From: Macrostomum lignano
Lineage: Eukaryota
DNA length: 60,344 bases
Assembly (NCBI GenBank): GCA_002269645.1
Contig: NIVC01002875.1
Span: forward strand, 1 to 60,344
Reading direction: 5' to 3'
Shown one piece after another: positions 1,816-3,493 of this stretch. A program made the position numbers and the translations under genes. Every line of letters begins with the position of its first letter. Positions within the stretch are counted from its first letter, which is position 1. The notes below the pieces were generated by a model that made no database searches, was not told the origin of the DNA, and worked only from the letters and a program-made list of their open reading frames with translations.

Positions 1816-2210
1816 CAGTGTGTTTTCGTGTAAGTCTTGCAGCTTACATACTCTCGGGTATGCTTTAAAAGATTTAAAAAGAAATGTAATCCTCTGTATG
1901 TAATCAATTATTCTTTTGTAAACAGGGACCATACATGTTAATAGAGACCCTAACAGGGACCCTACAGTTAGAGAGACCCTAACAGGGACCCTACAGTTAA
2001 TATTATACTTAAGACCCCAAAATAACTAAAAGTCAACCGAATCGTTAAGTAGACAAGAGTTTATATATTTCCGAAACACCAACAAATATCACGACAAGTT
2101 TTAATCACCAAAACCCGAAAAGTAATCAATTTCACGAACAAATTTCAGCCAGCGAGACAGCGTCTTCATCCCGTCTGGCGGTACGTCTGACACGACGGCT
2201 GTTTCTTCTC

Positions 2211-3493
2211 CTAGAGAAGTCTTCTGCGGTCACGTCTAGAGGCGCGTCTGCGAATCGCACGTCTGCGGATGGCCCGTATGCGGTTAAGTCTGGCGCGTCC
2301 GATGGCGCGCCTGCGGATGGCACGTTTAATGGCGCGTCTGCGGATGGCGCGTCTGATGGCGCGTCTGCGGATGGCGCGTCTGATGGCACGTCTGCGGTTA
2401 CGTCTGGCGCTTCTGGCACGACGGCCGCCTCTCCTCACGTCACGGCTTCTGCGAGCACGTCTGACACGTCTGCGGATGGCCCGTCTGCGGATCGCACGTC
2501 TGCGGATGGCGCGTCTTCGGATCGCCCGTCTGCGAATCGCCCGTCTGCGGATGGCGCGTCTGCGGATGGCGCGTCTGCGGATGGCGCGTCTGCGGATGGC
2601 GCGCCTGCGGATGGCACGTTTGATGGCACGTCTGCGGTTACGTCTGGCGCTTCTAGCACGACGGCCGCCTCTCTTTCTCACATCACGGCTTCTACGAGCA
2701 CGTCTGACGCGTCTGCGGATGGCGCGTCTGATGGCGCGCCTGCGGATCGCACGTCTGCGGATGGCGCGTCTGCGGATGGCGCGTCTGCGGATGGCGCGTC
2801 TGCGGATGGCGCGTCTGCGGATGGCACGTTTGATGGCACGTCTGCGGATGGCGCGTCTGCGGATGGCCCGTCTGCGGTTAAGTCTGGCGCGTCTGATGGC
2901 GCGCCTGCGGATGGCGCGTCTGCGGATGGCACGTCTGCGAATGCCGCGCCTGCGGATGGCACGTTTGATGGCACGTCTGCGGTTACGTCTGGCGCTTCTA
3001 GCACGACGGCCGCCTCTCCTTCTCACATCACGGCTTCTGCGAGCACGTCTGGCTCGTCTGAAGGCGCGTCTGCGGTAACGTCTGGCACGTCTGACACGAC
3101 GAATTCCTCTTCTTCTAGAGACACGTCTACTGCGGACACGTCTCGAGGCTCGTCTGATGGCCCATCTTCGTCTCCAGCTGTCGCGTCTTCCTCCTCTTTT
3201 ATCTTTCATATCTTTCTTATCTGCCGGTCTTTTGCACAGCCTGCTAACGTTTGCTGGCTGGTTGGCGGATCCAGCAGTGGCTGTGGCGTTTTTAGCTGCA
3301 GGTTTCTTCAGCTTGTTGTTAGCATTTGGTGTCGGTGCTGAGAGCTGAAACGGTTCGACGAAGTAAGGTGCACTGTCTGCTACATGCAACAGATCGTGCT
3401 GGCATATAGTCCTATCGTTCAATTTGGAACTTCGGAACTTACCACGAGAGTGCAGAGCACCGCAGCGCAGGCTGCCAACAGGATGAGTCTCAT
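2211..3493 (-). CDS. Candidate secreted, extremely arginine-rich repetitive protein (exon 1 3443-3493, exon 2 2211-3398)
   Basis: ATG at 3493 encodes [17 protein letters not shown], then a GTAAGT donor at 3442. A 44-nt intron ends at CCAG (3399) and joins in frame to ORF 2211..3422 ([13 protein letters not shown]...(RRRAI)n). This is the only minus-strand frame open across the whole repeat. Confidence 0.55.
2230..3080. repeat. 15-bp coding minisatellite (GGATGGCGCGTCTGC) with a larger block repeated three times
   Basis: Units are directly visible. The spacer block GCACGACGGCCGCCTCT...CACGGCTTCT recurs near 2415, 2655 and 3000. Confidence 0.95.

Follow-up and report, generated by a model that had tools for sequence, protein, structure and literature searches.

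A minus-strand locus of Macrostomum lignano that probably encodes an unannotated-looking, secreted arginine-rich protein

Known polycations and the present locus

Mlig-ap1, an adhesion protein of Macrostomum lignano that is secreted by the adhesive glands, contains over 3,600 amino acids (aa) of Lys/Arg repeats and has an isoelectric point above 14 (PMC6410801). It has been proposed to bind electrostatically to negatively charged sugars, and such sugars inhibit it (PMC6410801, PMC8621496). The peptides of its repeats are destroyed by trypsin, leaving them nearly invisible to tryptic proteomics, and short-read assemblies miss such repeats (PMC6410801, PMC8621496). Orphan secreted gland proteins are common in this animal, as 31 of 76 prostate-limited transcripts were without a BLAST match and 38 of 65 proteins predicted from prostate-limited transcripts had signal peptides (PMC5977470). 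Here we describe a locus on the minus strand of a 60,344-nucleotide (nt) stretch of M. lignano DNA (contig NIVC01002875.1 of GenBank assembly GCA_002269645.1, positions 1 to 60,344, hereafter the window). Judged from its sequence it is probably an unannotated-looking two-exon gene for a secreted Arg-rich protein, its expression being a prediction.

The predicted product comes from the species of Mlig-ap1 and, like it, has a very long low-complexity repeat of extreme basicity; in the present open reading frame (ORF) there are 184 Arg and the charge is ~+190. However, Mlig-ap1 is a protein of 5,407 aa with lectin, vWD and EGF domains, whereas the present ORF has ~400 aa and no Pfam domain. The repeats also differ, those of Mlig-ap1 being of a K/R/P/S/N type (e.g. 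SRKPRRKNRKSRKP) and those of the present ORF being almost pure Arg with Ala-Ile spacers. No homology between the two was detectable in a search of 5.8 billion proteins.

Protamines and other sperm nuclear basic proteins consist of >50% Arg, have RRR(R) clusters split by small residues and bind polyanions, and protamines are short, nuclear and without a signal peptide. The present ORF is similar to them in its RRR clusters and Arg content (45% R over the whole length, 55% R in the repeat body), and is predicted to bind polyanions. It differs in its length of ~400 aa, its signal-peptide-like first exon, its glycosylatable linker and the Ile at each fifth residue, and no protamine or sperm nuclear basic protein family was matched in Pfam (E <= 1), the PDB or the protein collection. 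The description "protamine-like", given to this product in an earlier note on the same DNA, is apt for its composition but not for its size or signal peptide, and no Pfam or PDB match supports it. The cement proteins Pc1, Pc2, Pc4 and Pc5 of the sandcastle worm are coacervate polycations rich in Lys, His, Gly and Tyr (as 3,4-dihydroxyphenylalanine, DOPA). They resemble the present product in being secreted (here a prediction), repetitive, strongly basic and suited to charge pairing with polyanions, and they differ in not being Arg-rich and in belonging to unrelated taxa.

As DNA, the array has the features of ordinary M. lignano minisatellites: a 15-nt unit repeated head to tail, periods of 240 and 345 nt at the higher-order level, and surroundings, both window and genome, that are rich in such arrays. 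In contrast to the control arrays of the window, it is codon-phased, its internal gaps are all divisible by three, and signal-peptide, splice, TATA-like and ATTAAA signals flank it. We also considered a precursor of multi-copy neuropeptides or antimicrobial peptides and rejected it, as the segments between basic sites are just Ala-Ile and too short (at least ~4-5 residues are needed). By sequence comparison, the predicted Arg-frame protein falls outside every defined family. By analogy, we infer that it may work like the Lys/Arg regions of Mlig-ap1 and other coacervate polycations.

Anatomy of the locus and codon-phased variation

The earlier note had proposed that a 17-codon hydrophobic exon with a GTAAGT donor can be spliced in frame onto a frame of 1.2 kb, and we reproduced this arrangement (exon 1 at 3493-3443, a 44-nt intron at 3442-3399 and the continuation at 3398-2211). 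Exon 1 starts with MR followed by a 15-residue hydrophobic stretch, for which the best 12-residue Kyte-Doolittle mean is 3.01. It therefore has the composition expected of a signal peptide, with a basic n-region followed by an h-region of ~7-15 residues at the N-terminus. To estimate how often chance would supply such an exon, we counted ATG-initiated hydrophobic exons that end in GTAAG or GTGAG and are able to splice in frame onto the ORF. When the 300 nt upstream were shuffled, one arose in 1 of 3000 trials; when real 300-nt segments of the window were placed upstream instead, one arose in 4 of 1238 cases. The GTAAGT donor and the CAG acceptors agree with the five verified introns of neighbouring genes, in each of which position +3 is a purine and the acceptor is CAG. 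Two acceptors, at 3399 and 3345, are in frame and lead to the same protein body, the second (TTTCAG) being the stronger. By inspection the cleavage context would be A-D-S/A with the 44-nt intron and V-L-S/A with the 98-nt intron; the latter product reads ...CTLVLS/APTPNANN, and V-x-S/A is a textbook cleavage context. The mRNA probably has its first AUG at ATG 3493, because ATG 3536 lies only 20 nt past the TATA-like box, which makes ATG 3493 the first ATG more than 20 nt after the box. Between 1800 and 4000, neither AATAAA nor ATTAAA was found on the plus strand.

The spliced product of the 44-nt intron is 412 aa long, with 45% R, 17% A and 10% I, and the Arg frame (3398-2211, minus strand) ends at the TAG at 2213-2211. 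Over the last 285 aa Arg reaches 55%, in agreement with the earlier description of a body more than half arginine, and the Pro/Ala/Lys linker with dibasic sites was likewise seen, at 3398-3195. The predicted mature product would have ~375-386 aa, containing 184 R, 14 K, 8 D and 0-1 E, for a net charge of ~+190. In a single-sequence AlphaFold2 model the linker is predicted to be disordered and the remainder to form two long helices (residues 74-236 and 246-394) broken at a Gly-Gly (mean predicted local distance difference test score, pLDDT, 77; predicted template modelling score, pTM, 0.26). Helices modelled for a homopolymer-like repeat are weak evidence, and the repeat unit is without an amphipathic moment at the 100 degrees per residue of an alpha-helix.

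Tandem Repeats Finder (TRF) reports a 15-nt unit in 34.6 copies, with higher-order periods of 240 and 345 nt. In codons the body reads CGC AGA CGC GCC ATC (RRRAI), together with the 12-nt variants RRAI and KRAI, and it is interrupted three times by a block of ~27 codons that starts at 3050, 2705 and 2462. The three block copies reported earlier are therefore present at these positions but are not identical, as the third differs and is one codon shorter than the versions with RRSRDVR[R/K]RGG. The Arg-rich tail noted earlier at 2132-2215 does lie in another frame, the +1 frame. Alignment identifies it as a degenerate fourth copy of the block with one nucleotide more than block 3, so that the terminal frameshift is present in this sequence. 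Beyond the frameshift, the block-homologous stretch reads NSRRVRRTARR in the +1 frame and is followed by a unique C-terminus, DEDAVSLAEICS and a stop, that ends just before the ATTAAA. Because the frameshifted stretch matches the block and runs into this unique C-terminus, the ancestral reading of the tail, as far as the alignment indicates, is also the Arg reading. The extra nucleotide is either an assembly indel or a genuine 1-nt frameshift at the cost of ~27 residues. We rejected a short intron as a means of restoring the frame there, since the sole GT..AG candidate is 23 nt long.

The variation among the repeats is phased to the codons of the Arg frame. Among the 25 in-register 15-nt units, six of the seven variant types, and 23 of 24 occurrences, fall at third positions of this frame and are synonymous, while in the acidic frame of the same strand none of the 24 is synonymous. 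By codon position in the Arg frame the variant types number 1/0/6, and only one of them is a CpG transition (C to T at unit position 9). When the three higher-order copies were aligned with one another, the variable columns numbered 6/12/23 by codon position (binomial p = 0.002), and the internal gaps among these copies are all of 3, 12 or 18 nt. The codon pairs that differ between copies in the Arg frame comprise 33 synonymous and 17 non-synonymous pairs, against no more than 9 synonymous and 39 or more non-synonymous pairs in four of the other five frames. As controls we used the window minisatellites whose period is a multiple of three, excluding a second TRF row on the focal array. None of these ten showed a comparable build-up of variant types at the synonymous sites of an open frame, and the few lopsided arrays among them rest on just 2-5 variant types.

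The absence of stop codons is a different matter. The earlier note had seen that a stop breaks the acidic frame in each block, and such stops do occur once per block (3025-3023, 2680-2678 and 2437-2435); small introns that would carry the acidic frame over them were rejected, as the lengths checked by hand break the frame. The conclusion that the continued openness of the Arg frame points to selection does not hold, however, because the consensus unit, CGCAGACGCGCCATC, is stop-free in all six frames and the Arg frame is not the only one to stay open. On the antisense strand, the codon-aligned frame (SADGA) has no stop anywhere in the region, because the sense frame is without TTA, CTA and TCA codons, and another frame (RMARL) is uninterrupted for 269 codons (2269-3078). 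The window is also crowded with minisatellite-derived ORFs of 150-2300 aa. The suggestion that the Arg frame is the selected one thus stands on its third-position variation and on gaps that are multiples of three, and no longer on its openness; the RMARL frame shows the same third-position variation. An open ORF by itself is not beyond chance; the combination of signal-peptide exon, variation in codon phase and flanking signals is. On this sequence evidence the minus-strand Arg frame is the best candidate for a coding frame, and we favour the view that it codes now or did so in the recent past.

On balance we think that the locus is an orphan, lineage-restricted two-exon gene for a signal peptide, a disordered and glycosylatable linker of ~70 residues and a polyarginine-like domain of ~330 residues. 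A TATA-type promoter near 3556 would give rise to an mRNA with its first AUG at 3493. Exon 1 would supply the signal peptide and be followed by a short phase-0 intron, of 44 or 98 nt, both of which keep the frame. Exon 2 would then encode the disordered linker, with its two N-glycosylation sequons, and the ~330 aa that follow, a body that may have arisen by amplification of the 15-nt unit CGC AGA CGC GCC ATC into three higher-order copies. The product would enter the secretory pathway and act as a polycation outside the cell or inside secretory granules. There it may act on polyanions (for example nucleic acids, anionic surfaces, or glycans that are acidic or sulphated) by binding, condensing or cross-linking them, on the electrostatic principle suggested for the Lys/Arg-rich regions of Mlig-ap1. 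Candidate sources are the adhesive, cement and prostate glands or another gland, and candidate roles are the antimicrobial, adhesive or seminal ones named in the earlier note and an egg-related one. What we observed is the anatomy of the locus, variation in phase with its codons, how rarely such a signal-peptide exon arises by chance and where the flanking signals lie; transcription, the choice of acceptor, secretion, polyanion binding and the tissue are what we infer from this. The anatomy and the selection signal are real, and the concept of a polycation has a precedent in M. lignano in Mlig-ap1. The features are listed in Table 1.

Table 1. Coordinates of the features of the Arg-frame locus, in the order of the minus strand
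Feature	Position	Strand	Remarks
TATA-like box, ATAAAA within CATAAAAG	3551-3556	-	~60 nt upstream of ATG 3493; putative promoter role
Exon 1, coding part	3493-3443	-	ATG 3493; 17 hydrophobic codons; signal-peptide-like n-region and h-region; ends in phase 0
Candidate 44-nt intron	3442-3399	-	GTAAGT donor at 3442; ends GCCAG; joins exon 1 in frame to 3398-2211
Alternative 98-nt intron	3442-3345	-	Donor shared with the 44-nt intron; pyrimidine-rich TTTCAG/CTC acceptor; in frame
Alternative 105-nt intron	3442-3338	-	Acceptor of gene model P0001, 7 nt beyond 3345; out of frame with the ATG; leaves an ORF of 26 aa
Non-repetitive linker	3398-3195	-	Pro/Ala/Lys/Asn-rich; two N-X-S/T sequons (NAT, NVS), one Cys, several dibasic sites
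46-nt segment GTTAGC...GAAAG	3248-3203	-	Removed as an intron in P0001; holds the only internal ATG of the Arg frame
Degenerate Arg-rich region	3194-3051	-	Both Arg codon families in use
Higher-order repeat, copy 1	3050-2706	-	Block, then RRRAI/KRAI units
Higher-order repeat, copy 2	2705-2463	-	
Higher-order repeat, copy 3	2462-2211	-	Ends in a degenerate fourth block with a +1-nt frameshift, then TAG 2213-2211
Displaced C-terminal tail, 27 residues	2215-2132	-	+1 frame; homologous to part of the block
ATTAAA polyadenylation-signal variant	2100-2105	-	27 nt past the stop of the tail frame, 106 nt past the stop of the Arg frame

Weighing the readings

Several observations weigh against a secreted Arg-frame protein. 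The 412-aa model had no match at E <= 1e-3 among 5.8 billion proteins, and the Arg-frame product matched no Pfam family at E <= 1 and had no relative in the PDB. The last repeat block is frameshifted by 1 nt. Potential convertase sites are present at nearly every RR or RRR, which makes the passage of an intact product through the secretory pathway hard to explain. The codon statistics stand on few independent variants (p ~0.002-0.007), and the antisense RMARL frame, which shares the third positions of the Arg frame, passes the synonymous test equally (32 vs 17). The Arg codons are mainly AGA (37%) and CGT (20%), which account for 4% and 2% of those in the conserved exons of the window, while the choice of Ala and Ile codons agrees with these exons. 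Finally, the verified introns of the window measure hundreds of nt to ~1 kb and no short intron is among them.

The single external datum is also unfavourable. An exhaustive HMMER search with the 83-aa linker gave one match, UniRef100_A0A1I8IPS5 of Macrostomum lignano (113 aa; P0001 below), and a search with the signal peptide, linker and acidic model again returned this entry alone. P0001 is 95% identical to the focal locus. It follows exon 1 outside the frame of the ATG, omits 105 nt (3442-3338) and reads 30 linker residues in the Arg frame, then drops the 46 nt at 3248-3203 and continues in the acidic frame to the first block stop. The search for relatives of the non-repetitive N-terminus, which the earlier note had suggested, thus gave only a model with other junctions and in the acidic frame, which does not support the Arg frame. 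With its junctions the ORF from ATG 3493 has 26 aa and the Arg frame is left without a start codon. P0001 is a stop-to-stop ORF on a spliced model and begins right after the in-frame TAG at 3519-3517, so we rejected its N-terminus as a mark of the transcription start; its UniRef name, "Ribonuclease E/G", was also rejected, as it has no Pfam support. That no transcript-derived protein was recovered for the focal gene is uninformative, because the search with a neighbouring gene gave UniRef entries only as well.

Some of these points would be expected if the array were a non-coding minisatellite, perhaps within a non-coding or decaying transcript, and if coincidence had produced the Arg ORF, the hydrophobic one upstream of it and the splice sites. 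Tandem repeats account for 15% of the genome (PMC5730564), the window contains dozens of ORFs that derive from repeats and have the sizes given above, including an Arg-rich one at 45864-46928, and the six-frame openness of the unit, the lack of homologues, the atypical Arg codon usage, the frameshifted last block and the 26-aa ORF under the P0001 junctions are all consistent with this explanation. We nevertheless consider it unlikely, since codon-phased variants and multiple-of-three gaps are unexpected in non-coding DNA and no such pattern was seen in the control arrays. In addition, a signal-peptide exon of this kind has a chance frequency of 0.03-0.3%, the Arg frame is open over ~70 unique codons where the other two frames of the gene strand are stopped, and promoter-like and polyadenylation-like signals are correctly placed on one strand only. 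A small secreted acidic protein of 126 aa, ending ...DVLAEAVM before the stop at 3023, with the RRRAI array as its 3' untranslated region (UTR), would fit P0001 better, as that model reads this linker and then the acidic frame across the 46-nt gap to the identical stop codon. With the 46-nt segment removed, the reading does pass from the Arg frame into the acidic one, and the ORF that starts at ATG 3493 is complete. However, the segment has a GTTAGC donor (T at +3), an AAG acceptor and no pyrimidine tract, unlike the five verified introns, and P0003, a sister model from the same annotation, hops between frames in single exons, which indicates that such models are unreliable. For these two reasons P0001 deserves limited weight. 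The openness of the acidic frame follows automatically from the Arg codon contexts AGA-C, AGA-A and CGA-G, and a 3' UTR offers no explanation of why variation downstream of 3023 follows the codons of the Arg frame, with none of the 24 occurrences synonymous in the acidic one. The lone difference between P0001 and the window in exon 3, E to A, would fit a single A-to-C change of GAG to GCG, which in the Arg frame would be synonymous (CGA to CGC). We regard the acidic protein as distinctly improbable.

The internal ATG raises another possibility, that of a non-secreted, protamine-like nuclear protein of 333 aa, e.g. a sperm nuclear basic protein. Its 55% Arg in RRR clusters would suit such a role, and its ORF is the longest that begins with Met when the 46-nt segment is retained and the first intron is either unspliced or spliced as the 105-nt intron. 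Against it, two AUGs lie upstream of the internal ATG (one in exon 2, the other at 3493), the presence of the signal-peptide exon would have to be put down to coincidence, and the protein would be far larger than known protamines, with an Ile at each fifth residue and no Pfam protamine match; we find it very doubtful. Least probable of all, in our estimation, is that the plus-strand RMARL frame (2269-3078, 269 aa) is the coding one, even though its third positions coincide with those of the Arg frame. It has an equal synonymous excess, with 5 of the 7 unit variants synonymous, and ATG 2269 is the first ATG past a plus-strand TATATA motif at 2062. We reject it because it is stopped at 3078, inside the degenerate repeat, and does not reach unique sequence, because the plus strand is without a polyadenylation signal between 1800 and 4000, and because the signal-peptide exon and splice signals on the opposite strand would be left unexplained. 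Its Pfam matches are sub-threshold repeat noise. Slightly less remote, but still highly unlikely, is a locus that makes two oppositely charged secreted products through the 46-nt segment, which when retained would give the ~+190 polycation and when removed the 126-aa acidic peptide, preceded by an identical signal peptide and linker. If true, the locus would hold a built-in polycation/polyanion pair, suited for example to coacervate formation or to attach-and-release chemistry.

If the secreted Arg-frame protein is real, it would be among the most arginine-dense secreted proteins described (184 Arg in ~380 residues), and would give an animal known to rely on charge interactions for its temporary adhesion a second polycationic secretory product, independent of the first. 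The locus would also be a compact example of a gene apparently made by amplifying a 15-nt unit. The annotation removed transcripts that overlap repeats, and simple or tandem repeats form ~15% of the genome; minisatellites that code for secreted low-complexity proteins of adhesion, reproduction or defence may therefore escape notice routinely in M. lignano. If the locus is not expressed, it is a warning about repeat ORFs that imitate coding periodicity.

Neighbouring genes and other repeats of the window

The contig is from M. lignano, as the UniRef entry P0002 equals the exons of the adjacent gene except for a few residues at both intron-side ends of the alignment. This gene encodes a TPR protein similar to GTF3C3 and lies ~3 kb upstream of the focal minus-strand gene; the fragment of it compared with P0002 is identical over two exons, the intron-side alignment ends excepted. 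The neighbours are ordinary animal genes, for the GTF3C3-like TPR protein, a TCP-1 chaperonin and a DEAD-box helicase, and their introns are packed with minisatellites. Simple and tandem repeats account for 15% of the M. lignano genome, and transcripts overlapping repeats were taken out of its GenBank annotation before submission (PMC5730564), which is sufficient reason for the focal locus to look unannotated. Rfam and tRNA scans of the window gave no match, and in the literature and its supplements we found no mention of the peptide motifs, the DNA unit or the accession.

The exons of the TPR gene lie at 6497-8744, 15681-16352 and 27636-28685 on the minus strand and are spread over >20 kb with minisatellite-filled introns. 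The gene models P0002 and P0003, both from M. lignano, map to it, and the changes of reading frame inside exons in P0003 point to an indel-ridden source sequence or to poor gene models in that annotation. The chaperonin and helicase genes, at 29637-33037 and 34688-37606 on the minus strand, have placeable introns that are each hundreds of nt to ~1 kb long and contain a minisatellite, with donors of the form GT[A/G]NGN and acceptors that are all CAG.

Near the focal gene, a 29-nt tandem repeat (2.7 copies, 92% matches) occupies 1921-1999, ~100 nt beyond its ATTAAA. In the AT-rich spacer upstream of the gene there is an inverted repeat (3990-4119 and 4300-4429) with 130-nt arms that are 81% complementary and 180 nt apart, with a nested 24-nt pair; it resembles a miniature inverted-repeat transposable element (MITE) or a foldback element. 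ORFs at 190-1141 resemble pieces of a non-LTR (long terminal repeat) retrotransposon, with a zinc-finger-like stretch and a reverse-transcriptase-like stretch containing VYADYSALL, although Pfam gave no match for 857-1141. Two adjoining long non-repetitive ORFs of 351 and 481 aa at 19889-22284 on the plus strand also have no Pfam match and may belong to a transposon or an orphan gene.

Arginine is also abundant in another repeat ORF, (RRDNRG)n, on the minus strand at 45864-46928 (354 aa, 18-nt unit). Its variant types are distributed 5/3/4 by codon position, that is, without codon phase; it looks non-coding and served as one of the controls. A tandem repeat of ~7 kb at 8746-15766 is almost pure purine on the plus strand (GC skew 1.0, AT skew ~0.8) and yields accidental minus-strand ORFs of 2313 and 2328 aa; situated between exons of the GTF3C3-like TPR gene, it is probably intronic. 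Tetranucleotide arrays that translate as SVCL or RQTD extend over several kb at 56400-59900, where the AT skew reaches 0.94 and the GC skew is near 0. A 571-aa ORF on the plus strand (24107-25822) combines a non-repetitive, coiled-coil-like N-terminal half with a (PVSAGPASAA)n tail built from a 30-nt unit; Pfam gives only a sub-threshold extensin-like match for it, and it could be another coding repeat.

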